A stretch of 63,595 bases of DNA, filler included, from Perkinsus chesapeaki ATCC PRA-425 (taxonomy: Eukaryota > Protista > Perkinsozoa): the NCBI GenBank assembly GCA_013115145.1. It is 5 parts of 5 records of this genome, joined end to end, with 100 filler letters (N's around TTAATTAATTAA, not from the genome) between each part and the next. Parts side by side here need not be neighbours in the genome. Positions count along the whole stretch, not along the records: positions 13,073 to 34,277 come from JAAPAO010000600.1; 4 more parts are not named here. The stretch is one strand, 5' to 3'. The notes under the pieces are model-generated. The model had not been told where the DNA came from and ran no database searches. It worked only from the letters and a program-made list of their open reading frames with translations. Numbering within the stretch: position 1 is the first letter of the stretch; each line of letters begins with the position of its first letter. Below are positions 2,621-32,989 of this stretch, piece by piece. A program made the position numbers and the translations under genes.

Positions 2621-4846
2621 TTAAATTTCGTATCTGAAACTGCCTTCACCCAGCAAGTGTTCTTGATGCCACCCGTCCAGCAATAAAGTTAAGTCATCCA
2701 AGCTCTCCACGAAAATCGCCTCCACTCCCTCCCTGAGCTCCCCAGCGATCTCGGACCAATCCCGCTCGTTCCCGCGCGGCAAGACGACAACTCGGACCCC
2801 CTCCAGACTCGCCGCGACTATTTTCTCCCGAATGCCTCCCACACGATGGACCTCCCCACCGAGAGTGATAGCACCCGTAAAGCCGACGTCACCAGGCAAG
2901 GCTTGGCCCCGCTGATGCGCCCAAAACAAAGCTGCCACCGCGAGCCCGAGAGAAGGACCGTCCTTTCGAGCTGACATATCCGGCCCGATATTCACATGCA
3001 TCGGTGTCGATACTTTTGCCCAACTCGCTGCGACTCGTATGGTCTCCTGCAAAGTAGTGCCAACTTGTCCTGTTATGAGCCAGTCAGTACTCGGCAAACA
3101 CTCCACATCGAGGACTGCTCCGCCGGCTTCTGTCCACCCCAATCCAACCGCACGGGAGTCCCGCCGAGCTCGATCCAACCGAGCAACTTGGTTTCCCGGA
3201 TACGTCGGGAGCCCAAGCCAATCGCTGACATTTCCGCCAGACACTCGCATAGGTAGTTCATTTTCCCCCTCGCACAAGCGAACTACCGCGCGCCTGAAAA
3301 TTCGCCATAAGTTCGTCTGCATCTCTCGAACACCCAGCTCTCTACAATAAGATGTCGCAATTCTTTCGAGTGCGCACTCTTCAATTACCAGCGTATCTTT
3401 GCCTATATTACACGCCTTTTCGCACTCCGGAATGATATACTTCCGCCCGATCGCTATCTTCTCCTTGTTCACAAAGCCCGCAATTCTAACCACGTCAAAT
3501 CTGTTGGCCAACGCAGCTGGAACTTCCTCAACGGAGTTCGCCGTGCCGATAAACAACACCCCACTTAAATCTATCGGCACTTCGATGAAGTTATCTGTGA
3601 AACCTCCCGCCGATCCACAATCTAGAGCATCCAGCAACGCCGATGCCGGATCACCCATGCCTCCTCCTCCCATCGAATGAGCGCCTCCACCCAGCTTGTC
3701 TATTTCATCCAGCAGTATAACTGGATTTACTCTCCCACTGCTGATAAACGCATTAACCAGTTTGCCCGCTTGACTGCCAATATAAGTCCGTCGATGCCCC
3801 TTCAGCTCTCCAGCGTCCGACAGCCCCCCCAAAGATACAACCTCAAATCTCCTCCCAATTGCCTCGGCGATGCTCCGAGCGATCGTCGTTTTGCCGCACC
3901 CAGGCGGGCCCACCAGCAAAATCGGTCTCACTCTTCCGGGCGTGGAAGATATCATTTCGAGTGCGCAAACTTCCACCACGCGTTCCTTAACCTCCTCCAG
4001 CCCATAGTGTGTTTCTGACAACTTTTTCCTAACTGTTTTCAAATCGGTGATTTTCCGTGATCGTTCTCGCGGCAACGACAGCAATAAATCCAGATATTGC
4101 CTATTCGCCGCATACTCCTGGCTGCTCGGCTCAAGCTGACGCAGCCTCTTCACTTCCCTGTCAAACGCCCACCGGACCCTCGTCATATCATGCGGTATCT
4201 TTGCGCCCAAATCGATCAACTGATCGATATCGTCCCTAGTTTTTTCTCCTTCATTTCTACTTTTAATTAAATCAATAACCATCCGCGCCCTTCCCACCAA
4301 TCCTGGCTCCTCCAGCATTTTTATTTTCTCTTCGTCCGAAACTTCCAGCATCGTCGCCAGTGCGTCTGGCATCCAATGCAGGTCTCTAGCATCACATCGC
4401 GCCAACGCCTGTGACCATTTTACGGCGAATTCCGAATCCGCTCGAGCAAGCCTCTCACACATCTCCATTAGTTCTTCCCGAACTCTTCGAATTGCTGCCC
4501 TGTTATCGTGCGTATCTTTTCGCACTATGAAGATTCCATTTTCGCTCCTCTCCACCCGCACTTTAGGTATCATCATGCCTCTCTCCCCAATCTCCACCAG
4601 TGTTCCCACGCGGCTCTGCGCATGCGTGCAGATCGCATGGCCGCCAATTCCAACGTTTCCCTTCTCCCCCGTCGGAAGCGCCACATGCACCCCTGGTAGT
4701 ACCACTTCTTCAATTTCTCGCAGATTCTTTGGGAGCCCTGATCCTGGCCGCGGGACGAATCCCTTCGGCAAGCTCCCAGTGAAATTCGCGTCGCTCAAAC
4801 GGTGCGCTCGTGCTCGCAGCACAATTGTAGACGAACGGCGGAACAT
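2621..4846 (-). CDS. LON: Lon protease (AAA+ plus S16 protease), 741 aa, intronless, probable mitochondrial presequence
   Basis: Walker A GPPGCGKT, Walker B ILLDEIDK, GHRRTYIGS motif, catalytic Ser in KDGPS and Lys in GGIREK. N-terminus MFRRSSTIVLRARAHRLS is Arg/Ser-rich. Confidence 0.95.
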   Translation of the reverse strand: MFRRSSTIVLRARAHRLSDANFTGSLPKGFVPRPGSGLPKNLREIEEVVLPGVHVALPTGEKGNVGIGGHAICTHAQSRVGTLVEIGERGMMIPKVRVERSENGIFIVRKDTHDNRAAIRRVREELMEMCERLARADSEFAVKWSQALARCDARDLHWMPDALATMLEVSDEEKIKMLEEPGLVGRARMVIDLIKSRNEGEKTRDDIDQLIDLGAKIPHDMTRVRWAFDREVKRLRQLEPSSQEYAANRQYLDLLLSLPRERSRKITDLKTVRKKLSETHYGLEEVKERVVEVCALEMISSTPGRVRPILLVGPPGCGKTTIARSIAEAIGRRFEVVSLGGLSDAGELKGHRRTYIGSQAGKLVNAFISSGRVNPVILLDEIDKLGGGAHSMGGGGMGDPASALLDALDCGSAGGFTDNFIEVPIDLSGVLFIGTANSVEEVPAALANRFDVVRIAGFVNKEKIAIGRKYIIPECEKACNIGKDTLVIEECALERIATSYCRELGVREMQTNLWRIFRRAVVRLCEGENELPMRVSGGNVSDWLGLPTYPGNQVARLDRARRDSRAVGLGWTEAGGAVLDVECLPSTDWLITGQVGTTLQETIRVAASWAKVSTPMHVNIGPDMSARKDGPSLGLAVAALFWAHQRGQALPGDVGFTGAITLGGEVHRVGGIREKIVAASLEGVRVVVLPRGNERDWSEIAGELREGVEAIFVESLDDLTLLLDGWHQEHLLGEGSFRYEI

Positions 4847-4951
4847 CGACGAAACAATCTGGGGAAAGGCCTGTGAGTCAATTCACAAACGCAACGCCGC
4901 CAAACTAGTGACAAAAGTACGTGAAGTCATGGAGGCAAAAGCCAGTAATAT

Positions 4952-4995
4952 TACCCTTCCCGAGGATTGAACCCATGGCCTACTGCTCAAGAATG
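4952..4995 (-). other. Decayed tRNA 3'-end fragment (intergenic, upstream of Lon)
   Basis: Minus strand reads ggccatggg-TTCAATC-ctcgg-gaagggt-A: T-loop, 5-nt stem, 7-nt acceptor strand, discriminator A. No 5' half. Confidence 0.5.
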
Positions 4996-5047: not shown

Positions 5048-5772
5048 CTAATCTTGCGCGCCGCGAAATTCACCCTCTTCGCTTCGTGGTCCACTTGTGA
5101 CGCTTTCACCCATTACCGAGTCATCACTCGAAAGCCGACTTGAGAGCAACTCCGGCAAGGCCCCTGGAGATGCTGTCAGCAAACTATGTAGATCCTCCGC
5201 TCTGAAGGAGGACGAAATACAGAACAACTCCACATAGGGCGGAATTTAAAGGAAGGCTCTAGGTTACGTAATAGATCACCTATACCTTTAATAAACATAA
5301 ACACCATTCAAAGATTCCTAATGCTCCCTCAACAACAACTGAGTACTACTACTACAACTACCGGAGGTGGTGATGTGAAGGTTAGCGGACCGTTATCTAT
5401 ACGCGATCCATAAGATATTTCACTCCTCACTTCACCGTTAAACTGTCGTAGTAATAAAAAAGTCCAGAAAACAAACCACACGCGCACCGATCCACTTCGA
5501 ACTGGTGCTGCTGCCACCCACTCACAGCAGAGCTGTATTCCTTTCCTCCCTGACCCTCAGATTTGTAACTTCAACATCATCCTCGTCCTCCTCCGCAGTT
5601 TCCCTTCGCTGCGGTTTCCAACCCTTCCGATCAAACAATCGATTCAATCCATCCCTAACTTCCCTCAAATCCTCGCATTTGGCAGCAACCTTAAGAATCC
5701 TCTCCGGCTCGAAATGCGGAAGACCGCTAACTCCCGCCAGCCAATCACCAATCACTTCGTCATTCGCCAACC
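5048..5772 (-). CDS. Unassigned coding exons, possibly a C-terminal extension of the ion channel gene
   Basis: Exon LANDEVIGDW...EEDEDDVEV follows a ccgtAG acceptor whose phase matches a potential donor at 6112 (GGG AAA AG|GTAGAA). No recognisable domain. Confidence 0.35.
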
Positions 5773-13145: not shown

Positions 13146-14539
13146 TTAAAAACTTCCAATTCGCCACCATCATCTAGGAGCTACAATTTTGGAGCTTTAG
13201 TGAAAACAATTTGAACGAATAAGGAACTTCAATTTGGATACATACTTCGTAACGCGACAAGGTCGACTTAGGCACCGTGGGGGGGGGGGGTACACCCAGG
13301 AAAGAACACTGGAGTAGAAGAGCAAACTAGACAAGCAAACGAAGAGAACACTCCATTGGGATCCATTCGTGCGCTCTAATCGCCACACTTCTCTCCCAGT
13401 ACCAGGGCAATAATTAGGAAATTATGGGAGCATTTCAGTGTGGGACGAGCAGTCCAATGCGGCATCAAACAGATCTGATGAGGGATGGCAGTAGTAAACC
13501 CACACATGCTGGGTAATAATGCAAACGAGTACTCCCGCAAAAGTCATTAACAGGCAAACTCTCAGAGCACAACCCGGGCAGCCAGACTACTGGTTGGATA
13601 AATCAGGTCGACGTCTTTCTATTTCAGTCAAGAGCTCTTGCCAAGATCCAGAGTATTTATCAGTCACTTCATCAATATGCATGGGATATTTCGATTCAGT
13701 CCCACTATTAGGGCACCATCGAATGTTACGAGAGTCTCAAAGAATTTCTTCGGAAGGAAACAAAGTCTAATCCAGCTATAGGGGCAGTCGCAGCCGAGAT
13801 TCGTTCTATGAGTCGGAGTCTGTGACATCCGCTGGTTCAAAATCTCAAAAGAGTATTTAGTCTCTCTTCCCCAGAACACGAGGGAAATTCTTGACAGTAT
13901 TACTTTACCACTGGCAAATCCCACGTTGGGGTTCCCAGCCCGATTAGTACGCGGTAGTTACCTTCCCAAAATCACGTCCAACCCTCTGCCCTAGTCACTA
14001 GGGCCTAGTGAGCTACCTGAGGATGCTAGAATGAAGGCATGCCTTTACGAGCCATCCAATAAAATTCCCTTCTCGGTTGAAACGCTCAGCAGAATATGGA
14101 TGATCAACGTTAATTGGACTTTGGGGAGAGACACCATAGAATTCATTCCGTCTCTCCTCAACAAAGCCAATGTCGAAATTAAACATTCCGCACTAGCCCG
14201 AATTACACAACCGTGTACTGTATGTACTGTAAGTAAAGGCAAATGGTCGCACTGAAATGTGAATCGATCAGAATGGCGAACGCTTTTTTGAATTCTCGTT
14301 GCAACGTGCCTTGTTGTGTTTGGTGGAGAGCAGCGTGTCGGTGATGTAAGCAGTTTATGAGCAGGAATACGCAGCTTCCACTTACTCTGCTTTGTTACTC
14401 CAACCAGGTTGAGCTAGAAAGATACTTTTAAGGCTTTTAAACTGTGTGTATTTAGGAGGTGTGAAAAGGATTTTTCAGTTGTTTTTCAAGGCCGTGTTCT
14501 TTCCAAGACTCGACCGAGCCATTTATTTTTTTGCCCAGA

Positions 14540-17500
14540 ATGCTGGTTAAGTGCGAAACTAAATCAAACAGGGTCAAAGGCCTTTCCTTCCACCCGAAGC
14601 AGACGTGGATCTTGGCCTCTCTCCATAACGGGTCAATCCAACTTTGGGACTACCGGTAAGAAGTAATGAAGAAAATGTGATAATTATGTCAGGCTTGGCA
14701 CTTTGATTGATACCTTTGACGAGCATGAAGGTCCAGTGAGGGGAGTGTGCTTCCATCGAACGCAACCATTGTTCGTGTCTGGTGGTGATGACTATAAAAT
14801 CAAGGTAATAAGGAGGGAATGTAAACTAATATAATAGATTATTAAAAGATCGTTATGTAAATGTTCGGGCCTTGCCCTGCTTTTCGGATTGAGCTGTTTA
14901 ATATGGTTGATGCATTTTCTGCTGGTAATGACTGTGGTTACTAGTGTTCGAAAGTACCAGTGTTTTATACACAGTTTGAACCAAAACTTGTGCAAGTTCT
15001 TTTTTGGAAATAAATAAATGCAGAATGGTCGAGGATGGTGCCGGAGTGACCTTGATATTATAAACGTTTGTTTCAAGTGTCATGAATGGTACTTTCCGAG
15101 CATGTTCTGAAAATCCGCAAATATATTGTCCCGGCAAAAACTACCTTCTAGGATTCGTATTATATCGTTTGTAAAAATAAGCCGGCGAAGAACGAATTCG
15201 CGTAACGGTTTATTTGTTTACAGTTGTTCAATTTAGGTTTTTATAAAATTATACTTTGGGAGCTTGGTGCTGATTATCGTTCTATAATATTTCAAGTGCT
15301 CAGGGATTTTTTGATTTATTTTTATTCAGGTTTGGAACTACCGTCTGCGTCGGTGCATCTTTACCTTGTTGGGCCATCTCGACTATATCCGAACGGTCCA
15401 ATTCCATAACGAGTAAAAATGGGGATATGGAAATTATTACTTTTCGAAGTTTGATTGAAATTATCAGTTTATCATCGGAATTGTTCTTCGCATTCTTACC
15501 CGGTGTTAAAATGAGCGGGGTAGTATTTGAAGCACAAGAGAGCTTTGATACTCCCGCGAACCAGGCAGATGGTGAATCTTGGTTCGACTAATCCGCGCTA
15601 CGTTAGCTATTTGAAAGGGAATTTTTGGGAGTATGGGCTGGGGGTCAAAGACTTGGGAATCTAGGGAAAGCCTGTGGACGTTCGGGCAGGAGGATGTGGT
15701 TTCATTCGTGTTGTCGGGGAAGTTCTAATCTGTGCTCCAAAGGTTTGGACCATCGCAGGAAATTCAAGGTTCTTGTATTACGGAGTTGTGTTACTGTTCC
15801 GGAGATATGATTTAAATTATTGTATATAATTATTATAATAAAATATGTTGCAAGGTCAAGGGGCTTGCTGGAGAGAAGAAGTTGGGCCGTTGATTGGATA
15901 ATAAATTATTGTCGAATTTCTTCAATTTTTGAAGGGGGTAGATTAACCTCGGGGGGAAGGAGGAGCATGCAAACCTTAATGATTGCATGAGTTGGGCTTT
16001 CAGGTACCCGTGGATTGTCTCGGCATCAGATGACCAAACTGTTAGGATATGGAATTGGCAGTCTCGGTCGTGTATAGCAGTGTTGACAGGTGAGGTTGAA
16101 GCGTGCATTTGGTGGAGAGAAGGATACGTTTTCAGGTCATAATCATTATGTTATGTGTGCGCAGTTTCATCCGACTCAAGATTTGGTAGTGAGTGCGAGT
16201 TTGGATCAAACTATTAGGGTTTGGGATACAACTGGGTTGAGGTATTTTGTATCATGCACTCTTCAACCTAAGATATACTTCTCAGGGATAAGACCGTCTC
16301 TATAGGATCGATGGGTGGAGGCATGATGGGACCCATGGGAGGTAAGAAAATAAATATTTTGATCGTTTTGAAAAAGTCGGGATTGATGGAGTGTAGATTC
16401 TATGTTGAACTACATCGTGTGTTTAATTTTGTACAGTATGTTTTATTATGTGTATGTAATCACATTATAATTGGTGATGGAATTGATTACGTGCTCCATC
16501 GTTATCGTCCAGTGCGTGTTGCTGACTAAATGATATTATAATAATACTGAGAATGGGCTAATACTGGGAGATTAAGTCGTTATCAAGTGATTTGGATTTT
16601 CAATAATTTATGTCTTTACCAAATTTAACAGCAAGACGAGTTTGGATCTTATTTGCCATCGAATGTGATGTTTAGAATAGACTGCGGGGAAGCAGTTTTA
16701 GTACTGCAATCGCACCCTCCATGAACGAGAAATCGTTAGCGGGAAAATCACTAAGTCATATTGACTTGCAGCCGACCAGGATCGTCGCGATCGTTGAACC
16801 CTCATTGCGTGAATGAGTTCGAATGATGTTTCATACATGTCACTCCGCTGTCCCCGATTGTGTCGATATTTCTCAGGTGCTGGAGGATCGAGAGGAGGCG
16901 GCTCGTTGGGCGCTGGAGCGGACATGTTCGGAACCACCGATGCGGTTGTGAAGTAAAAAGAATAAGACTCTTCTCCAGTTCTGTTTTGGGTGCTGCGAGT
17001 TTTTCTGCCTGTAGACATTTCTATAAAATATAATTAGTAATATGATTTTGTACCATTTTTATTCATATGGACTACAGTTGGCGATATTATCGGACGTTCG
17101 TTTTTCGAAGTGGGCGCCCTAAGCCTCAAACCCAATCAGGACCTTTTCTAGAATCGTCTGATGGTTACAGTATCACCGTTATAATGTGTTGAGGAATATA
17201 AACGATGTCGAAACTTTCGACATCGAAAGAGTCCTCAGAAAATTTTTCGGGTATTTTTTCAGCGGAGTGGTTTTTTCTGACACTTATGGCGTTAGAATTG
17301 ATATGGTAATTAATTTACGCGCCTTAAAATTGGAAGCATTTTTATGCCTTCTTGTAGTAATAACTTTTTTAATATGTCAGCAGGAGGGATGGAGTTGTTA
17401 GTCTGCCAACAGTAGTTAATATTATTATTATTGCTACTAGATTGTACTGTATGGATTTGACAATACAGGGACACTGTAAAGTATTGCTAATATAAAGTAT

Positions 17501-20500
17501 TAATCGTACGGGATGTGCCGATAAAATAGAGAAATAAAAAAATTAGTGCCAGCGAAAGTGTTGTGAGTTATACATGACACAATAATACGCTTTTATGGTA
17601 TATAAATATGGCAGTGATAAACCAATCGTAGTTTAATTCATTTTTTCCAGATACGTTCTTGAAGGTCACGAGCGTGGAGTAAACTGGGCATCGTTCCATC
17701 CCACTATGCCATTAATCGTTTCTGGTGAGGGCGATTTTTTCCGGAAGAATTTTGATTTTTTCCCGTAGGGTCGGATGACAGACTTATCAAGATTTGGCGA
17801 ATGGGCGATGGCAAAGCGTGGGAGGTTGACACACTTAGGGGTCATTTCAACAACGTCTCTGCAGTGGCTTTTACGAGTAAGAAGAATATTTAATTATACC
17901 ATATTTCCGTCTGATCGTAAGCCTGTCGAATAGGGAGTTTCATGTACTAGGTAACTTTGACTTAATCCCGCGTACAGCACGTTTCAGCAAGACTTTTTTC
18001 TTTTATAATTCGCCGGAAATTTTTCTGCCGGAATTTTTTCCCGGAAATTTTTTGGCGGTGGAAGATAATATTGTGTTATTCTCCAGCTAAGAAGGATCTG
18101 ATAATTTCCGATTCGGAAGATCGCACCATCAGAGTTTGGGACGCCACTAAGAGGGTTGCGATACACACCTTCAGGTAGGATGAAAGATTCTTCAGAGGTT
18201 GATTCGTGATCCTCAGGCGTGAGAACGATCGATTTTGGATACTCGCGGTGCACCCTACCAATAGCCTTATTGCCGCAGGTAAGATTCTTGAGGCCAGAAA
18301 ATGTGCAGTTGGAACGTTATTGAATTTTGACATGTTATTCATAAATGATATTGATAGTGATATCTTAATTCCTTTTTTTCAGGCCATGACTCTGGCATGG
18401 TTGTATTCAAGCTTGATAGGGAGAGACCAGTGTTCGCCTTGGGGAGCGCGAGTGGTCATAGTGGACAAGTAATACGAATGGGGAAATGATTTTTTATTGC
18501 TGCTTCACAGTATTGATATTACTTATATACACTGCGCGTCAAATTCTTATCAACTACGGTTTCTTCGATCTTGAAATTTAAATATCACGTATTTGGTATT
18601 ATGCGCTTGGTATATTGTGAAAATAGCTGTTATAGCTGACATACACAGGTGATTTCAGTGAGCTAGTCGCAGTCGTGCCAGATATATGGGAAAAGTAAGC
18701 CGACAAATTGTTATGAACTACTTTGAAAACTAATCTAACATGAGGATATCACAAGAACCGAGGGACCCTCATCTCAATCTTCTTCTATTCTTTTAGTCTC
18801 TTTATCTGGCCAAGGATGGTTATTTAACAGTACAGAATATCGATCAAGCTAAGGTGCAGCCGGGAACTACTGAGAGTAGGTCGGAGGTTCGATCCCTGGT
18901 GCGGGCATTTTATTGGTATTTATTTCCTAAGTCATTGGTAAGCTTGTTGAACCATCACTGTGATTAAATTTTCATTGATATTCATTCGCCCATTTTTGTT
19001 CATCGGGTAGGTTGTTGTTTTTCAGTCACGCCACAGACGACAAGTCTGGCGACTCTGAGGAGGCCACCGAATGCGATGGTATCGTCCTTGCGGCAATTGA
19101 TGGTGAATCCGTATTCCAGTACGGATATGAACGCAATTGTCATGTACATGGACCAGCAGAATGTTTGTAATAGGGGCAATAATCGATCAGGTGATCGATA
19201 TCTTTCTAGCGAGATCATCTTGCGCTGGCTTTCTCGAATTTTTTTTCGGCTAAATATGTAGACGAGCACGCATTCATTCCAAGACTGAAGGATTTGGATG
19301 GGGCAGTTTGGTTATCATCGTTTACCTGATCGATTGTGGTTAATTTGATAACTATCCTGGTAGATTATCAGCTCCGAAAAAATCGATTAAGTGATCGATT
19401 ATGTTATAGCTTATATTCCAGGTTCCTATGATCTATACACCTGCACCAACGCCCAGCTAACTCAAGGTCTCCGGGATCCCCTTGCCCCCAAGGAAGGAGC
19501 ATCTTGCAATGGAGCATGCTTTGTCAGTCGCAACAGGCTCGCGGTAATTAAAGTTGTCTTAATTTCGTACGCGAAAATTTTGTATTTTTATGCGTTTCTG
19601 AGAGCGAGTTATTCAGCAAGAGATTATTATATTATGAAGTATTTATTATAATATCTTTATTAATAATACTACTAGTTGTCTATAATAAGATAAGATCGAT
19701 ATAATATAGAGAATCGAAAAATGAAAGGGGAGTCAATTTTATGTGGTTTTTTCGAGATTGTTTGCGCGCTAAGCGTATTGTGAGTAAAACTGATATTTTC
19801 AATAATTATTATAAATACAATTTCAAAAGGGCGTGTAAGATTATTAACTCTTTAATTGTTGTTATGATAGTAAGATCGTACACGCGTAACTATTTTATAT
19901 TTTCAATATCAGGTGCTTCACAGGGATAACACTTTGGGGCTGTATAATCTCAATAATGAGCTGGTTAAGAAATTCGAACCTCCGGTGCCGAAGAATCAGA
20001 GTAATGTGGAGGCTATATATCAAGGAGGGAATAACAAGGTAATAGTTAAATCGATCAGGTGATCGATTATCTAGCATGCGTTCAGTGCCTTTTATAGTGC
20101 GGGAGTATCATGCATTTCGCCGAGATCCCCTATGTCGAGATGGGGATTTCTGAGCGGAAATTTCTGGGGAATTTTCGCTTTCGCTGGCGGCGAGGTTGTT
20201 TGGTGCAGAGTCGTTATTTTATATTTATACAATCGATCGCGTGATCGATTTTGTTTTCAAGGTTCTGCTCCGGTCCGGTGAAGTGGTGCAGCTCTTTGAC
20301 TTCAACGCTAGAAGTGTCGTTGGCGAGATCACCGTGGCTGGTGGGGTGAGATACGTTGTATGGAGCAAGAATATGGAGTAGGCACAGGTTCGATCCCGGC
20401 ACCTGTCATTATTCCTGTATTTTTAGTTATGTTGCATTCCTGGGGAAGCACAATATTACTTTGGCGAACGGACGCAATCTGGAGCTCTTGCATTCTTTGC

Positions 20501-23500
20501 ATGAGAATGTGAGGGTTAAATCAGGGGTAATATTTCGGGGAGAAAAGAGGGCAATTTTTTTCCTATGACAAATGGTTTGAAAATGCGGATGTTTAGGAGA
20601 ACGTGTTTTGGTTTTTTTGCGGGGAATTTTGGGCGTTATTAGTTGCAAATTTTTGGGCTGATCCGGAAATGAATATTCCTGTTTGAAAGAGCTGATGAGA
20701 ATAGAAGATCATTCAGAACTTTTCTGCATTTTTCAGAAAATTTTCAGCAAAATTTTCGGTGATTTTTGTGGAATTTTTTGTCAGGTATGGGACGAGACTC
20801 AACCAGGAGTGTTTGTGTTCACAACATTATCACATTTGAAGTATACGATAATAAATGGAGATTATGGCATTATCAACAGTAGGCGAAATTATACCATATT
20901 TCCGTCCGATCTTGATCACAGCGCGGACTGCATTGTAGAGTCGTTTCGAGAATAAAGTTAGTTGATCAGTATCAGGGAGAGAATCTTAGTTGAGCGGTAT
21001 CCGTGTCAAATCACCTTCGACTCGACGCGAGCCTGTGGGCTGTTGGTGCTGCTGCTACTGCTTCGATTGCTTATAGTGGGCACTTCTGAAGTACCTAGGT
21101 TTAGCGTAAAGTCGTTGAGCAAATAGAATTAACGATGGTAACACCATACGCGTTGGGCGGTTGCGAGATAAATTTTGGTACTTGCGAATGCATTACGATT
21201 GACTATGCCGAAAAGATTTAAATTGGAAAGTTACTTTCGCTTGGGCAGGCTTGGCTGAAGTTTACTATCTGTGTCGGGTGACGAAGCAAACGGTTGTCTA
21301 TCTGGACAGGGAGAATGCTATCCATAAGCGCCCTCTTAATAATGCAGAGTAGGTTGCAGCGTGCATTTCGGGGTGGAGAAAGATGCGTTTTTTGTTAGGT
21401 ACTGCTTTAAGGTTGCATTGTGGCAGAAACGGTATGATGATGTTAAGAAATGGATCAAGCAAGCTCGAGTGTGTGGAAATGTCAGCATAGGGTAATAGGA
21501 GGGGTATCTTAGGTTGATGGGGGGAAGATGCGCGAGAGGTTGGAAGGCGGTCGATGATGAACACGCTTTAGCTTCGATTGTGAATATGAGAATCCATTTA
21601 CAGACCGAGTCTTCCAAACTCATGAGAAAGGTTCGCACATTTTTTGAAGAAAAAGATTTCTATTGCCATTTTGGTATCAAATTGATGTATGGTTAATGAT
21701 ACCATTACCTCTGTAGTATTACATTGTGTATCAATATATACTTTAGAAGAGGGCTTATGTGGATAGATACTCATTATTATCAACTTATTATATTCTATCT
21801 ATCACCGTCGCTCGGTCACTCTGGTCAACAAGTAACACATTTTCTTCCAGCTATTCAACACCAACACAGTGTGTTTCCGATTCATCCTTTTTTCCGATTT
21901 TTCGAGTTTTTTCGTTTTTTTTGTTCCTTCGTGAAGCCTTATTTTTGTATGCTAAAAGGTGGTGCTTGGCGTAGCTTACCAATTTCTGCGCAGCTTTCAT
22001 ACCGTATTTTCCTGCAGGTACCTTAAATCTAAGGGGTACCCAGAAGTAGCCCTTCAATTCGTTGATGATCCGCTCACGCGGTTCAATTTGAGTCTTGAAT
22101 TTGGTCATCTCGACGAAGCCCTCAGTTGTGCGAAGAGGATCGACCAGAAAGTAAGTCGCAGGTTCGAATCCCAGGAGAGGTATTTTTATTTTAGGAGGTT
22201 TGGGGTCGACTCGGTAAGGAGGCATTGAGGCAAGGAAATGTCCAGGTAAGATATTACGGATTCTCTCGTGAGTTTTCAAATTGATTTTTCGTGGAAATTG
22301 GCGGCAGTTGGGATAAGGGTGGAAAATTAGGTTTTTTCGCCTAGAAATTTTTGGGGAATCTTCTCACAGATAAGTAGTGTATCGAAGAGTGTAAATCATT
22401 CTAAAAATATCATTTCTAGAGGGTGAATGACGATGTATTTTGGGAAAAATATTTTTCAGATGGTTGAAATGGTGTACCAGAAGACGAGGAATCTTTCCGG
22501 CTTGTCATTCCTTTATTTGTCCACCGGAAACCGCGACAAGCTGAAAAAGATGTTGACGATTGCCAAAAAGAGGAATGATCCTATGGAAAGGTAACTGGGT
22601 TTTCTTGCAATTTTATTGCATTTTATTGGTTAGGTTCAATACTGCTATGTATCTTGGGGATGTTGAGGAGCGCGCGAGGGTGTTGGCTGAGGCGGGACAG
22701 TTGCCGTTGGCCGCAATTATGGCTAGTAATAAGGAGGATATCGATGAACGATTTAATATGGGAGAATTGTCAAACGATTTATAATGGGGAAATCTTAATG
22801 TTTAATTAGTTTCTTGTTTACCTTTTGTACACTTTTCTGTGAAGATTGGATTGTGCTCCGCACGGGCCAAAAATTGTGAATATAATAGGTTTGTAGAGGG
22901 AGAAAAAATATGATTTACACGGTTCTAGTGGGAATGTTTGGTGGTGTTGTAGATTCATTTGAGTTTATTATTTTTATGCAATTACTTGCTCAATTTCTAT
23001 ATTTCTGTATCTCTGTCGCACTTGAATCTAAGCTGGATTTGTGTCCAACTCCACGTGAACGACTTTATCATTCTAGCAATAACTAAGAGGAGATTTCTGA
23101 GCTTAATTCTTCTACTTGGTCGATTGGTACGAAGATACGGAAGTCGCGCCATGAGTGGATAGTAGGGATTTGTATTATGTTTCAGAAACATACGGGCTGG
23201 ATGATCTCTATCAGGAGTTATCTGCCGGCAATCAAGCGCTGACTGGTAAGTGTAAGGAGGATTAATGATTATTATTTTTCGGTTTTTCTATCAGAAAGCG
23301 CGCCGGATGTCAAGTCGTCGTTGTTGCAGCCTCCAGTGCCGCTAACGCAAGCAGCCACGACCAACTGGCCTTTCTTGATGAGCATGGAGCAGATCTTCGA
23401 TAATAAATGGGCGGGTGTTGAGGAGGCAGCGCCGGCTGAGGAGGAGCAGCAGCAAACGTTCTTGCCGGGCTTCGATGATGAGGAAGAAAACGTCGCCAAT

Positions 23501-26406
23501 GCAGGAGGGTTTGATGGTAATCGAAAGGGCGTGGGTACGAATCCTGGTAGAGTCATTTTCAGCGTGGGGAGATGATGCTTTGGCTGCACCAGATGAAGAG
23601 GTTGATGTTGGAAATGCGTGGGGATCTGATGAAGATCTTGGTAGGAATGGGGGTATAGCGAAATCGATCACGTGATCGATTCTGTAGAAATTTTTGAAAA
23701 ATTTTCATTCCGGGCATTTGCTGGAGGTTTCTAGTGGTTTCGTGGAAAAAATAGAGGGACTGGGAATGACTTTCCTATTTAAGAAGCCGAAAAATTACGG
23801 GGACGATTTCAACTGAGGCCGGAGGTAGCTCAGAATATCTTCCTTTTCAGGTCTTGGAGATATAGATTTGCCTGCCAGTCCTCAAGATGAAGCGATTGAC
23901 GAGAGCATCGTGACACCAGGTAAGCGCGAGCTGGTGAGGGTTTGTGATGGTTTTGGTGGGCAGGTGAAGGATTCTGTAGAAGGTGGTTGAGAAATAGAAA
24001 ACTCGTGCCGGACTTGATCGCTGCTGGGGAGTTTGATGAAGCGTTGGGAATGCTGCAGAGGAGGTAATGGTTAAGATACGATGACGGAGGGACAACCGTG
24101 GGGAAGAACAATTTCGGCAGTTTGGTGATATTACAAAGTCGTATCAAATCTTCCTTGTTGCTCGAACTACCTTTCGGATCGTTGAACTGCTTCGCGAACG
24201 AACGGATGGGAGCGGTTAAGAATATGCAGTATATTAAAGCCTCGAAAATTGGTGTGTAAGTTGGGGAATAATATTAGTTTGGAATGTCGAATTGACAAAT
24301 GTTATCAAGTTGATGATACAGAAAGTTTTGCCTAATAATGTCTGTGAATCGAAAAAGTAAAATTATCGTAAGATTTTCTAATTTCCAAATAGTAGTGAAA
24401 GTACCAAAAGAAATCGTCTATCGTCGTTGAGATTTTTGGGTAAAATCGATATTTTCGTGAAAAATATTTTCTCCTCAGGATCGGCCTGATCAACGCAGCA
24501 CCATTAAAGCCGCTGTTCGAAGAGATCTACTCCGCCACTCGCTGCAGGTAAAAAATTTTCCCGCCGGAAAAGAATTATTTTTCCAGTTTGCCGTCGTTGC
24601 CGCTGGAACCCTCTGTTGGGCTTCCGGTCGTCACTGCTACGAGCAAGCTTGGTGTGCCGAATGCGGAAATAGAACCAGCAGGGTTGTTCACGGTAGGAGG
24701 CAAAATCTGATATGAAAGATTTCTTGTACCAGGTTCAATTTTTGTTGGGAAAGCTGAGAGAAGGACACAAGCTTACTACGATGGGGAAGTTCAAGGATTC
24801 TCTGGAGGTGTTTAGATATGTAAGATGAAATCGATCGGGTAATCGATTTGGTCGATAGCTAATGTCATATATCTGAGGGATGGGAAGCGGTCTGCCGTCG
24901 TGGCCCGGAGTGTTTCGTTCGAACTGTTCGGAAGGTCGGTTCTCGAGAAAAAACTTTACAGATTTAGGATCATTCTAATGCAAGTGTTAGCTGCTTTGCT
25001 ACAATCGATCACGCGATCGATTTTGGTAACGTTAGGTTCTTCAAGCGTGCACTATGGCAACTGCTGCTAATAGTGAGGAGGAAGCTCAGTTGACCGAGTT
25101 CATCGAGGTTTGCTCTCAGTAATAGCAAATTATTTTTTCCACGGAAAAAATTATATTTCCGTTCTCAGATACGTACAGGGCATGCGGCTGGAGACTACCA
25201 GAAGGGAGCTTCCTCACGATCAGGTGAGATGCGTTATTGATTGAAAAAATGAATCTTTCTCGAAAGTTAGAGTTCGTGAAAGAGTTGTTCTCGTTTCGCG
25301 CTCGTAAGTGATTTGGCGAGCAGTGGCATCGGAAAATTAGTTACTTGGTCTACAGGAAATATTTTTCGCACATTTTTCTGTTAGAAATTGGAAGAGTATT
25401 TTCAGTTGAAGAAAAGAGTTGAAACATTTTCCCAATTATTCTGACATTGTCGCATTGAAAAGTAGAAGCAAGAGAAGGAATGCGCAAAGGTCGCAGTGTG
25501 TCGCACGGCTTTGTGCGGCACAGAGTTGGACTGAACCAAAAAATGTCTCGGAAAACGCATATGAAAAGCGGGAAATAGAACATTGAAGGGACCGTGGAGG
25601 CGCTATGATTGGTGAAAGTAATTTAATTCACTTGTCGTTTTTTCAGGTCTCTCGATCCTTGGAGCTCTCGGCATACTTCACCTGTGTGAATCTCCAACCA
25701 TCTCATCATTTACTCACCTTGAGAGCGGCCATGACACAGTGCTTTAAAGCGCATAATTACCTTACTGCAGCTAACATGGCTCGTAAGATATTTTGGGTTG
25801 AATTTTGGGAAGATTCATTTTAGGTCGATTGATGTTGGGCAATTTTGGGGCTAGTAAGACTCCAGAGGTTGTCAACCAGGCCAGGAAGATCTTGGCGGTT
25901 TGCGAGCAGCGCGGGACAGATGCGCACGAAATCGATTTTGATAGCAACGACACCGATCCTAAACTGACTATCTGCTCGAGATCGATGAGCGTCATATACC
26001 CCAACCGAGGTAAGGCAGTGCAAAAAAATACAGAAAATGCCAGAAAGTTGTGAAACTTTGGGAGATTCTTAATGAAGATTTTGTGGTTGATATACTTGTT
26101 TCCTTTTAAGAAAATAAGTCTCGCGAAATACTGGGACGATATGCTACCGATCTTCCTTTCTAGTGAATTGACCACGTTCGAGCGGCGGTTTTAAATCTAG
26201 TAAGATATTCCTATAGATAATATCATTCAGGTGAGGCTGTCGTCCGATGTCCCTATTGTAATGCCGACTACAAGGCAGAGTTCGCTGGAAGTCTCTGCGA
26301 TGTGTGCCAACTCTCAGAAATCGGTGCCCGTAAGTCTCCTGGAAATCACCAATACCTATTTATCACTTTTGTAGGTGTGCTCGGTGTGCAGTTCCGACCT
26401 CTGTAG
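14540..26406 (+). CDS. COPA: Coatomer subunit alpha (COPI), many exons
   Basis: [31 protein letters not shown]; WD40 repeats ([39 protein letters not shown]); [11 protein letters not shown]; C-terminal CPYCNA...[10 protein letters not shown]; stop at 26404-26406. Confidence 0.97.
18876..18911 (+). other. tRNA 3'-end fragment starting at the donor site of COPA intron 18876-19025
   Basis: GTAGGtcggagg-TTCGATC-cctgg-tgcgggc-A-tttt. Confidence 0.7.
19167..19421 (+). mobile_element. 255-nt COPA intron with a subterminal palindrome at both ends (candidate introner/MITE-like)
   Basis: aatcgatcaggtgatcgata at 19181-19200 and aatcgattaagtgatcgatt at 19381-19400. Flanking exons join as DQQNV-C-SYDLY. 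Confidence 0.55.
20039..20261 (+). mobile_element. 223-nt COPA intron with a subterminal palindrome at both ends (candidate introner/MITE-like)
   Basis: aatcgatcaggtgatcgatt at 20049-20068 and aatcgatcgcgtgatcgatt at 20231-20250. CAAG|GT occurs at both junctions. Confidence 0.6.
20378..20426 (+). other. 49-nt COPA intron made of a tRNA 3'-end fragment
   Basis: GTAGGcacagg-TTCGATC-ccggc-acctgtc-A-ttattcctgtatttttAG. Confidence 0.7.
22151..22194 (+). other. 44-nt COPA intron made of a tRNA 3'-end fragment plus oligo-T
   Basis: GTAAGtcgcagg-TTCGAAT-cccag-gagaggt-A-tttttattttAG. Confidence 0.75.
23641..23850 (+). repeat. 210-nt COPA intron with one perfect 20-bp palindrome near the donor
   Basis: AATCGATCACGTGATCGATT at 23662-23681; no partner seen at the 3' end. 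Confidence 0.7.
24820..25035 (+). mobile_element. 216-nt COPA intron with a subterminal palindrome at both ends (candidate introner/MITE-like)
   Basis: aatcgatcgggtaatcgatt at 24829-24848 and aatcgatcacgcgatcgatt at 25003-25022. Exons join as VFRY|VLQA. Confidence 0.6.
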
Positions 26407-26551
26407 AGACAAAAGCGCACGCCCGGCTGATCGATTTGATCTGGTCGGTAGGTTTCTGGTCGGCAATATTTCCTTTGAGATTTCGGTTTGGGTTTGGCTT
26501 GATTGAGGGGTAATTTTCAAGTGTAATTGAAATCACTGTTTCCATTGTAAA

Positions 26552-30324: not shown

Positions 30325-30729
30325 CTCAAACACAAGTGAGAGACGAGACAACTAAGGATAAGAAGAAACCTCAGGATCGTAAAACCCTCAACCCAGACTG
30401 GAAGCCGGGACTCGACTATCAAGCACAATTGATCAGGTTTCACTAGTTCCACGCAGCTTATGGAGAGGCCCCGCGCTAAAGTAATTAGGAAGGGGCGCGT
30501 TCAACTGGTGGTGGTACACGTGCGGTGTGAGAACCCCACTCGGGTACTCATCCCTGCTACGTGCTCTAATACATGAAAAGCCATGAAGACTATATGAGCG
30601 GTGGCAACCCACCGGGAGCTATTCAGAAGCTCTTAGAAATAAATAGTTATGGTCCTCATTACGGGCCTACAGTAAATAAGGTTATGCGTCGAAGCTCTCT
30701 ACATTATGAGCTATAGCACACGTGCAACC
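30325..30729 (-). repeat. ~405-bp element, copy 1 of 2, directly 5' of the secreted-protein ORF
   Basis: Colinear similarity to 32572-32989 (shared blocks tagttccacgcag, ggtacacgt.cggtg, tgctacgtgctc, atatgagcggtg..acccaccg, gctattca.aagctc, ttatgcgtcgaagctc, cgtgcaac). Confidence 0.85.
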
Positions 30730-31511: not shown

Positions 31512-32495
31512 TCACTCTTGTGAGTTTGCCTCCTTATCTACTAATGTTCCGTAGAAGAATTTGAAAATGGTTCTAGCTGTGCTCAAGTTGCCGGTACCGC
31601 CTCTCATTGGCCAAGCATGTCCAACACCTTCCATTGAGGCCAGGTAAACTTCCTTCCCAACAGGACAGGTCGTGTATGCTTCAAGAACAGCGCCTCCTCG
31701 CTGACCAACTCTCCTTCTCGATTTCCTATCGCAATTCATCCTCTTAGCCCATCTCGAGAAGTCACTCTCTACAGACGGAAAGGTCAAAAATGGGTGATCA
31801 CGGTCATCACGGCGCCCATTGTAAGGCACAAGCTTATCGTCCTTGCCATTTATTTTGATAATCCTCTGCACCTCACTAGGGGTAGGCTTGAAGGCATCAT
31901 CACATACCTTATACCCTCTTTTTAGTCCAGGTTCGAGAGTTAAGATACCAGCAACTGAGGCCGCTTGAGAAACGATGTTATAGCATAATAGAGCTTCAGC
32001 TAGCATTCCACCGTTGCTAACACCGAGGGCGTACACTGGCATGTTGGTGACGTTAATTCTTCTTTCAACCTCAGGGATGAGTTGCTTCACAAAATCAATG
32101 TCATCGACTGACTTGTTAGATTGACAGCAGGTACCGGCATTGTAGCCCCACCCCCAGATCGATCCATTCCCAAAGTCAGGGCTCTGGAGAGGGCAGGGTG
32201 TGACTAGGGTAGCATTAAACTTCCTAGCTCTCTCCTTGATGCCATACAATACCATGTTCTCTTTCTGCCACTCGTCACACTTGTCTTGTGCTGGATCCCA
32301 GTCAACCAAAGTGAAGATTATGGCACTCGGTTTCTCCTTCCCAGAGTACGTCCAAAACGCCCGAGGCCTCCCCTGGTGGAGGAGCGTTGAACGCGTGTCA
32401 GTCCATATGTCGGGCTCGCTCGAGATGTCTGCCTTCAGACCATAAGCTCCTATGCTTAATCCAAAGACTACCAGGATGACAACCGGATAGGACAT
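31512..32495 (-). CDS. Secreted alpha/beta-hydrolase, PHB-depolymerase/LpqC-like esterase, 327 aa, intronless
   Basis: Signal peptide; YNAGTCC, DDIDFVKQLI, nucleophile elbow GVSNGG, acid DDKLVPY, His in GVGHAWP. Confidence 0.85.
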   Translation of the reverse strand: MSYPVVILVVFGLSIGAYGLKADISSEPDIWTDTRSTLLHQGRPRAFWTYSGKEKPSAIIFTLVDWDPAQDKCDEWQKENMVLYGIKERARKFNATLVTPCPLQSPDFGNGSIWGWGYNAGTCCQSNKSVDDIDFVKQLIPEVERRINVTNMPVYALGVSNGGMLAEALLCYNIVSQAASVAGILTLEPGLKRGYKVCDDAFKPTPSEVQRIIKINGKDDKLVPYNGRRDDRDHPFLTFPSVESDFSRWAKRMNCDRKSRRRVGQRGGAVLEAYTTCPVGKEVYLASMEGVGHAWPMRGGTGNLSTARTIFKFFYGTLVDKEANSQE

Positions 32496-32571: not shown

Positions 32572-32989
32572 CTCAAATGAGGGTGATAGATAAGAAGCTA
32601 TTGATATGAGGAAACCACACAATTGTAAAAACCCGCTACCCTGAATGAACCCGTGACTCGAGTATCACGCGCGATTGATCAAATTCGTTAGTTCCACGCA
32701 GATAAGAAGGGTCCCCACGCTTAAGTGACTAGGAATGGGCGCGCTCCACTGGTCGAGGTACACGTACGGTGCTACCGCCCCAATCGGATTCTCGTCTTTG
32801 CTACGTGCTCCACGATACGATAAGTCATAATGACGATATGAGCGGTGACACCCACCGAAAGCTATTCATAAGCTCAGAACCTAAAGCTCTTGGAAGTGAT
32901 TAAGAAGCTCACGACAAGCCTACAATAAATAAGATTATGCGTCGAAGCTCATTACATTGTGACGTAGACCCTGTGGCACGCGTGCAACA
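32572..32989 (-). repeat. ~418-bp element, copy 2 of 2, directly 5' of the esterase
   Basis: Colinear diverged copy of 30325-30729. Confidence 0.85.

Follow-up and report, generated by a model that had tools for sequence, protein, structure and literature searches.

Here we report that a 20-nt palindrome, AATCGATCACGTGATCGATT, recurs beside the splice sites of four introns of the coatomer alpha (COPA) gene of Perkinsus chesapeaki, at intron positions that are shared with P. olseni. The window analysed is a stretch of 63,595 nt joined from five parts of the P. chesapeaki ATCC PRA-425 assembly (GCA_013115145.1), in which positions 13073-34277 are 21,205 bp of a single contig (JAAPAO010000600.1) carrying COPA on the plus strand at 14540..26406. 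The data favour a conserved cis element adjacent to splice sites over a recent mobile element. Our preferred reading, held tentatively and somewhat short of an even chance, is that selection maintains the palindrome as a cis element, one that probably derives from a repeat and works in RNA as a clasp or hairpin. An intron with inverted repeats at its two ends is usually taken as a fresh insertion of an intron-creating element (introner), whereas here the intron positions predate the split of the two Perkinsus species, and the finding separates the origin of an intron from the present role of the repeat within it.

The palindrome and its copies in COPA

A pattern search returned exactly seven matches to the 20-mer, with 0-3 mismatches, against none in 100 dinucleotide-preserving shuffles. 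All seven, together with a degenerate eighth copy, are confined to four plus-strand COPA introns. Intron 1 (19167..19421; 255 nt, phase 1) has a 5' copy, c1, at 19181..19200 (two mismatches, 14 nt from the donor), the degenerate internal copy at 19314..19335 and a 3' copy, c2, at 19381..19400 (two mismatches, 21 nt from the acceptor). The two copies in intron 2 (20039..20261; 223 nt, phase 0) have one mismatch each and pair with one another at 19/20 positions; c3 (20049..20068) lies 10 nt from the donor and c4 (20231..20250) 11 nt from the acceptor. Intron 3 (23641..23850; 210 nt, phase 1) holds one copy, c5, at 23662..23681, which is the perfect palindrome and lies 21 nt from the donor; a second, degenerate 3' partner sought in this intron was not significant. 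In intron 4 (24820..25035; 216 nt, phase 0), c6 at 24829..24848 (three mismatches, 9 nt from the donor) and c7 at 25003..25022 (one mismatch, 13 nt from the acceptor) pair at 18/20 positions. Under uniform placement within their own introns, the probability that all seven copies would lie so near splice sites is P ~2e-5.

The palindrome is built of three stacked palindromic hexamers (ATCGAT, CACGTG and ATCGAT) within a 20-22 nt dyad-symmetric repeat, with conserved arms of 8 nt and a 4-nt centre that varies (ACGT, AGGT, GCGT, GGGT, AAGT, ACGC). The 5' copies of introns 1 and 2 have the flanks GTAATAG...TCTAGC in common, while the 3' copies of introns 2 and 4 share TAC-palindrome-TTTG (92% over 26 nt). 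An alignment of eight introns of 210-258 nt has only the 20-26 nt palindrome blocks in common, at a mean column identity of 39%. A first-pass annotation of this DNA had described the copies near the splice sites of these four introns, the shared flanks at two 5' and two 3' ends and the unrelated interiors, and all three descriptions are borne out. It had also proposed that the end copies of introns 1, 2 and 4 behave as inverted repeats, which they do (16-18/20 Watson-Crick complementary), yet each copy is in itself a full palindrome.

As a separate observation, three-quarters of the 5' copies (19187-19196, 20055-20064 and 24835-24844) have G at position 10, giving CAG|GTGATC or GGG|GTAATC. These sites, 19-24 nt past the true donor, resemble a 5' splice site, and a cryptic donor at 19191 would keep the reading frame.

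COPA was located by tblastn with Vitrella COPA and by exact mapping of the P. chesapeaki protein FOL47_009008 (NCBI; 1307 amino acids), which aligns to the window with zero mismatches; the C-terminal exon is 86% identical to a P. olseni fragment. The gene has 39 annotated introns (about 38-39 in all), whose lengths are bimodal, with 20 at 37-61 nt and 19 at 104-698 nt, so the earlier description of a genome of tiny introns does not hold for this gene. The boundaries of the four palindrome-bearing introns are supported by the reading frame, by homology to Vitrella COPA and by the exact junction peptides of FOL47_009008.

Age of the introns

Annotated COPA proteins were mapped to their own genomic DNA and aligned for P. 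chesapeaki, for two P. olseni loci (L002 and L007) and for Vitrella; Symbiodinium and Marchantia COPA were included later in the comparison of intron positions. Between P. chesapeaki and P. olseni, 37 intron positions and phases coincide, and those of introns 1-4 are among them. The P. olseni orthologs of introns 1-4 measure 223, 180, 51 and 184-185 nt, and the 20-mer is absent from all four, even with 4 mismatches allowed. When P. olseni introns were searched by local alignment for relics of the 20-mer, the scores did not exceed those of shuffles. Among the candidates only one stands out, a position-matched perfect 15-nt palindrome in intron 2 of L007 (AATCGAC-T-GTCGATT, 16 nt from the donor; one change in L002), with the outer arms of the P. 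chesapeaki copy and different inner bases. Because position and outer arms match, the intron 2 copy is probably ancestral, and in at least this intron the palindrome probably predates the P. chesapeaki/P. olseni split. Its dyad symmetry appears to have been retained despite the inner-base differences between the species.

The positions of introns 1-4 are absent from the COPA genes of Vitrella, Symbiodinium and Marchantia. Of the 38-39 Perkinsus COPA intron positions, just 5 recur in Vitrella or Symbiodinium, none of them belonging to introns 1-4, which on this comparison are Perkinsus-lineage introns. More broadly, COPA intron positions are nearly all lineage-specific, the intron counts of the orthologs (window, L002, L005, L008, L009) being 38-39 in Perkinsus, 43 in Vitrella and at least 55 in Symbiodinium. 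The gene is also longer in P. chesapeaki than in P. olseni (11.9 kb vs 7.7 kb), because a dozen orthologous introns measure 200-600 nt in the former and about 50 nt in the latter.

These comparisons bear directly on the proposal, made at first pass, that an introner or a miniature inverted-repeat transposable element (MITE) created these introns. Orthologous introns without the motif had been named there as the observation that would count against an introner, and such introns are what P. olseni has at all four positions, which speaks against an introner at least for the time since the split of the two species. A recent introner as the creator of introns 1-4 was rejected on these orthologs, identical in position and phase, on the lack of a target-site duplication (TSD) and on the unrelated interiors. 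Whereas introners are marked by positions that are missing from the orthologs of close relatives, both P. olseni COPA loci have these introns. The similarity over the whole length that introner-derived introns would have was likewise not found, and the flanks of other genomic copies are also unrelated; nor is there a fixed offset between element ends and splice sites, the distances ranging over 9-21 nt. An ancient intron-creating element may still lie behind introns 1-4, since their positions are Perkinsus-specific and P. olseni intron 2 has the shorter palindrome.

Genomic dispersal and a divergent second allele

Logan contigs of two P. chesapeaki DNA runs were aligned to positions 19100-25099. 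About 56 contigs per run match this region only in part and pile up at the palindromes, where contig depth in the bins of c3, c4, c5 and c7 reaches 207-360 against a baseline of 96, with loose contig ends at 20068, 20251, 23661, 23681 and 25003. The flanks of these partial contigs are consensus-free (agreement 0.44-0.6), and this, together with the pile-up, indicates that the repeat unit is the palindrome alone. Many partial contigs carry two copies, since they connect one palindrome to a different one, with 20-21 nt on one side. The palindrome is thus dispersed in the P. chesapeaki genome and often paired, with tens of copies detected, a rough lower bound given by filtered contig matching.

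No copy or half-site occurs in ~20 kb of other P. chesapeaki DNA (L004 and L010, reached through paralogs of a neighbouring gene), too little for a genome-wide statement, and no copy occurs in the remaining ~15 kb of the COPA contig. The seven COPA copies span 6 kb, whereas ~35 kb of further P. chesapeaki sequence has none; the copies are thus strongly clustered at COPA. A scan of metagenomes for paired ATCGAT-N6-ATCGAT sites was uninformative because the pattern is too permissive for tetranucleotide repeats: its more than 120 loci were (GATC)n/(GATA)n microsatellites, and none had two true palindromes.

One of the sequencing runs (X4, 2022) contains a second COPA allele or homeolog, at a depth equal to that of the reference allele and with exons 9-17% divergent; it was not seen in the 2020 run, and it points to hybridity, polyploidy or a mixed culture. 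The small intron at 23920-23963 differs by more than 30% between the alleles. At the palindrome-bearing introns the alignment of the second allele crosses the exon and the palindrome, ends at or just beyond the inner edge (23681, 20070, 24864) and picks up again exactly at 25003, while the intron interiors are unalignable and of other length (162 nt in the reference vs 183 nt for intron 3). Across 23646-23681, which spans c5, the second allele has zero differences among those listed; this statement concerns intron 3 only, the other copies being judged by alignment extent alone. A 6-nt insertion in the second allele moves c6 relative to the donor, and the region stays alignable.

On these alignments, the palindromes appear better conserved than the adjacent coding exons. 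Such conservation points to selection, or perhaps to some homogenising process, and it is hard to reconcile with an inert relic, because the second allele keeps the palindromes but has unalignable interiors.

Predicted folding and pairing of intron ends

In RNA folding predictions, a single copy forms an 8-bp hairpin of -6.7 to -9.1 kcal/mol and two copies form a duplex of 17-19 bp of -23 to -30 kcal/mol. The minimum-free-energy folds of introns 2 and 4 pair their own two copies, enclosing ~150-160 nt and leaving 21-22 unpaired nt between donor and acceptor; the duplex between the copies reaches -26 to -30 kcal/mol, compared with about -7 to -9 kcal/mol for either hairpin. Compared with shuffles, the end complementarity of introns 1, 2 and 4 is strong (z = -5.2, -5.3 and -4.7; duplexes of -26 to -33 kcal/mol), and among the 19 P. 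chesapeaki COPA introns longer than 100 nt a clear signal is restricted to these three. One additional intron, whose annotated boundary is doubtful, has z = -2.7, the other 15 are not significant, and none of 11 tested P. olseni introns has significant end complementarity.

A general rule that Perkinsus introns carry a donor-proximal hairpin was considered and is unsupported by the hairpin z-scores, the mean z being -0.41 (p = 0.08) in P. chesapeaki, with no signal in P. olseni or Vitrella. In the COPA gene of Vitrella brassicaformis (L005), many introns have a run of (CA)n, (GACA)n or (GA)n at the start and one of (TG)n or (TCTG)n at the end, which gives significant end complementarity (z of -3.7 and -4.3), for example in introns 2168-2304 and 5069-5228. 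These repeat-ended introns are reminiscent of the AC/GT structured introns of fish.

A proposed clasp or hairpin in the pre-mRNA

We suggest that a small foldback or MITE-like repeat probably settled in pre-existing long introns, and that its present role would most likely be exerted in the pre-mRNA, as a clasp where copies are paired and as a hairpin where a copy is single. In introns 1, 2 and 4 a helix between the copies would loop out ~150-180 nt and leave 21-35 unpaired nt from donor to acceptor, such that the spliceosome may then meet a geometry resembling the organism's default introns of 37-61 nt. An RNA-level role is ranked first because it agrees with the placement at splice sites, with the difference between 5'-type and 3'-type flanks and with the energetics. 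Pairing of intron ends has precedents in the AC/GT structured introns of fish (PMC4691745) and in the inverted-repeat-bracketed introns of Amoebophrya (PMC7789003).

Several results weigh against this reading. Of the 19 COPA introns longer than 100 nt, 15 are without the palindrome, so that it is not required to splice long introns, and the earlier idea of a device for long introns in general fails on the same count; the palindrome is also missing from all long introns of the neighbouring genes. A lone copy, such as those of intron 3 and of P. olseni intron 2, is less easily explained by a clasp than by a hairpin or a protein site. In P. olseni, the orthologs of introns 1, 2 and 4 are long (180-223 nt) yet have no end complementarity. 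In the best fold of intron 1 the 5' copy pairs with the degenerate internal copy and not with the 3' copy, and forcing end-to-end pairing costs 5 kcal/mol. Covariation specific to same-intron copy pairs was not found, cross-intron pairs matching as well (c4 and c7 are complementary at 20/20 positions); c6 alone is suggestive, since its deviations find their best match in its own partner c7. Where several introns of a transcript carry the identical palindrome, pairing between introns becomes a risk. The palindrome is rare and clustered at COPA, given the copy-free ~20 kb elsewhere. Finally, the only RNA-labelled P. chesapeaki runs, X1 and X2 (4 Mb of contigs each), contain no sequence of the COPA locus, so the COPA splice sites rest on homology and annotation.

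The splice-site-pairing structure proposed at first pass therefore stands in part: the z-scores of about -5 in three introns, the predicted pairing in introns 2 and 4 and the conservation in the second allele speak for it, while the single-copy intron, the lack of same-intron covariation and the long P. olseni orthologs without the motif do not. Four introns in one essential gene are a small, tractable system for asking whether pairing of intron ends helps a spliceosome tuned to ~45-nt introns to process ~220-nt introns, a question that can be tested; related Perkinsus species are reportedly transfectable.

Alternative explanations

A less probable alternative, which we nevertheless take as the strongest of the rivals, is that the palindrome acts in DNA as a site for a dimeric protein, be it a transcription factor, an insulator or chromatin factor, a recombinase or a transposase. 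Its intron location would then, with the same limited likelihood, merely reflect the non-coding space available in a compact genome. Perfect dyad symmetry with conserved 8-nt arms around a variable 4-nt centre is typical of dimer-bound sites, and lone copies occur, one in intron 3 and one in the P. olseni ortholog of intron 2, which keeps the symmetry with other inner bases. The strong clustering in one gene and the lack of specific covariation in same-intron pairs also fit, as do two half-sites outside the introns. One of these, AATCGATCAG (14262..14287), lies ~275 nt upstream of the COPA start codon and the other, TGATCGATT (26411..26436), in the 3' untranslated region ~20 nt past the stop codon; the membership of both in the motif family is uncertain, and their mutual complementarity (81% over 26 nt) may be chance. 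What a protein site leaves unexplained is that no copy lies more than 21 nt from a splice site, at the probability given above, and that 5'-type and 3'-type copies have distinct conserved flanks. No factor for the palindrome is known, and the core is equally conserved on the transcribed strand, so that an RNA role is just as compatible.

Rather unlikely, and a little more so than a protein site, is that the palindromes are inert terminal-repeat remains of a MITE-like or introner-like transposon; that this element created introns in the Perkinsus ancestor or inserted into existing short introns is no likelier. The dispersal of often paired copies through the genome would suit such a relic, as would outer-edge spans of 194-220 bp, which are MITE-sized, and a clustering in one gene that resembles local hopping. 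Intron 3 measures 210 nt against 51 nt in P. olseni, as expected of a lineage-specific insertion, many other P. chesapeaki introns are expanded relative to P. olseni, the few COPA intron positions common to Vitrella or Symbiodinium imply many gains in this lineage, and introners bearing inverted repeats occur in related lineages (PMC7789003).

Of the features that mark a MITE, the terminal inverted repeats are present, but each end is a full palindrome by itself, not a single arm of such a repeat. No consistent direct repeat or TSD flanks the palindrome copies, and TA, TTA and longer duplications were not found by eye. The CAAG|GT at both junctions of intron 2, earlier likened to a TSD, was rejected as one: the upstream CAAG is conserved coding sequence and the AAG acceptor is chance, since the P. 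olseni ortholog ends in TTCAG. The interiors are not homologous, neither between introns nor between genomic copies, and the distance to the splice site varies. No presence/absence polymorphism was seen, the second allele having every assessable copy. Only 21-35 nt in total per intron lie outside the copies, which is too short for a complete earlier intron, and terminal inverted repeats of their own were not found in the other long introns of COPA. All four positions are common to P. olseni, and a divergent allele that keeps the palindromes and not the interiors is not what an inert relic predicts.

It is improbable, more so than either of these, that Perkinsus introns carry a small vocabulary of reusable selected modules ~10-20 nt past the donor, with the palindrome as a shared clasp. 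Such a clasp, self-pairing or recognised by a trans factor, may mark a set of long introns for splicing or regulation, and the palindrome may then be neither a transposon relic nor an intron-specific structure. Three candidates are present in COPA: the ATCGAT-CACGTG-ATCGAT element, a block of the form GGTTCGAWYCC, and one of 25 nt in which a segment may be 5S-like.

We consider it very unlikely that the duplex or hairpin is a substrate for an RNase III/Dicer-type enzyme or another RNA-binding factor; an equally improbable outcome would be small RNAs, or regulated isoforms with retained introns, skipped exons or circular RNA, from COPA and a few other genes. The predicted duplex of ~17-19 bp, a palindromic form by which either strand could target all copies, the several copies per transcript that permit inter-intron pairing and the small set of loci would agree with this purely inferential reading. 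No Rfam family matched.

Other features of the locus

A second family of intron motifs, GGTTCGAWYCC, resembles a transfer RNA T-arm or RNA polymerase III B-box and lies 9-18 nt past the donor in four mostly short COPA introns, with blocks at window positions 18886, 20387, 22161 and 23535 (introns 18876-19025, 20378-20426, 22151-22194 and 23517-23562). Other P. chesapeaki genomic contigs match these introns over 33-38 nt at ~85% identity, and related blocks, CCTGGTTCGACTC and CAGTTCGAATCCGG, occur in P. olseni introns (L002 6494-6586, 7395-7456 and 7925-8018), two of which are orthologous. ARAGORN and Rfam found no gene at these blocks. A 25-nt block, AATTATACCATATTTCCGTCYGATC, is 96% identical at 17892-17916 and 20887-20911, in different COPA introns and 8-15 nt past the donor. 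It may contain a segment, CGTCTGATC, that we take to resemble 5S ribosomal RNA, and a similar sequence, GCCATACCCGTATC, is found in the orthologous P. olseni intron 4819-4971.

The public COPA model has two likely errors. In the region 14632-14692 the preferred position of the first intron is 14656-14692, with a GTAAGA donor, because this restores the conserved residues SIQLWDYR. In the region 24064-24478 the annotated exon 24121-24255 adds 45 residues that are missing in P. olseni and Vitrella, and probably lies within one intron of 415 nt. Scans of the COPA piece with Rfam and for transfer RNAs returned nothing relevant.

A SUMO-like gene lies ~150 nt downstream of COPA. Further along, a repeat of ~250 nt (75-84% identity) occurs at 30459-30709 and 32703-32962, just upstream of two unrelated minus-strand open reading frames (30351-29392 and 32495-31515), and is possibly a promoter or 5' element common to the two, or else a dispersed repeat. 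The open reading frame at 31515-32495 (minus strand) is a single exon of 327 amino acids with, by eye, a hydrophobic start resembling a signal peptide and a GVSNGG serine-hydrolase-like motif. It has no Pfam match, and its only two detectable relatives are both P. chesapeaki paralogs (52% and 64% identity).

Comparison with known systems

The results indicate that a palindromic intron repeat, of which our literature searches found no description, exists in perkinsids, which are the sister group of dinoflagellates. The full-text searches found neither the motif nor introners in Perkinsus, in agreement with the first-pass annotation, which knew of no earlier account.

The closest known systems are the inverted-repeat introners of Amoebophrya and the introners with terminal inverted repeats in dinoflagellates and Aureococcus (PMC7789003; bioRxiv 10.1101/2020.10.14.339549; PMC9860276). 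As in these, short inverted repeats lie just inside both intron ends, a predicted hairpin joins the exon boundaries, and the repeats recur in many introns of one genome, here in a related alveolate lineage. Unlike introners, the Perkinsus introns are canonical GT-AG introns at positions common to another species, without direct repeats or a TSD; their interiors are unrelated, the copies detected number tens rather than thousands, and divergent alleles keep the motif. The inverted repeats of Amoebophrya have no motif specific to a family, whereas each end in Perkinsus is one fixed, complete palindrome.

Like the palindrome, MITEs and foldback elements reside in introns as dispersed copies, span ~200 bp and have inverted symmetry at their ends. 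The palindrome differs from them in having neither a TSD nor a homologous interior, in the lack of any insertion polymorphism seen and in ends conserved beyond the neutral rate. Sites bound by dimers, of the E-box or recombinase type, also have two conserved inverted arms around a variable centre of 4-6 nt, and the perfect copy has a CACGTG core; unlike such protein sites, the Perkinsus copies are strictly placed beside splice sites.

Structures that bring distant parts of an intron together are found in yeast, whose introns have "zipper" stems between the 5' splice site and the branchpoint. The (AC)n/(GT)n introns of fish (PMC4691745) resemble those of Perkinsus COPA in having complementary segments near both splice sites and a predicted shortening of the effective intron. 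Where the fish and yeast cases use simple repeats or intron-specific pairs, Perkinsus reuses one 20-nt palindrome that can also fold on itself. Inverted repeats at intron ends are already known in related lineages, and what appears to be new is one fixed palindrome, seemingly constrained, in introns at old positions.

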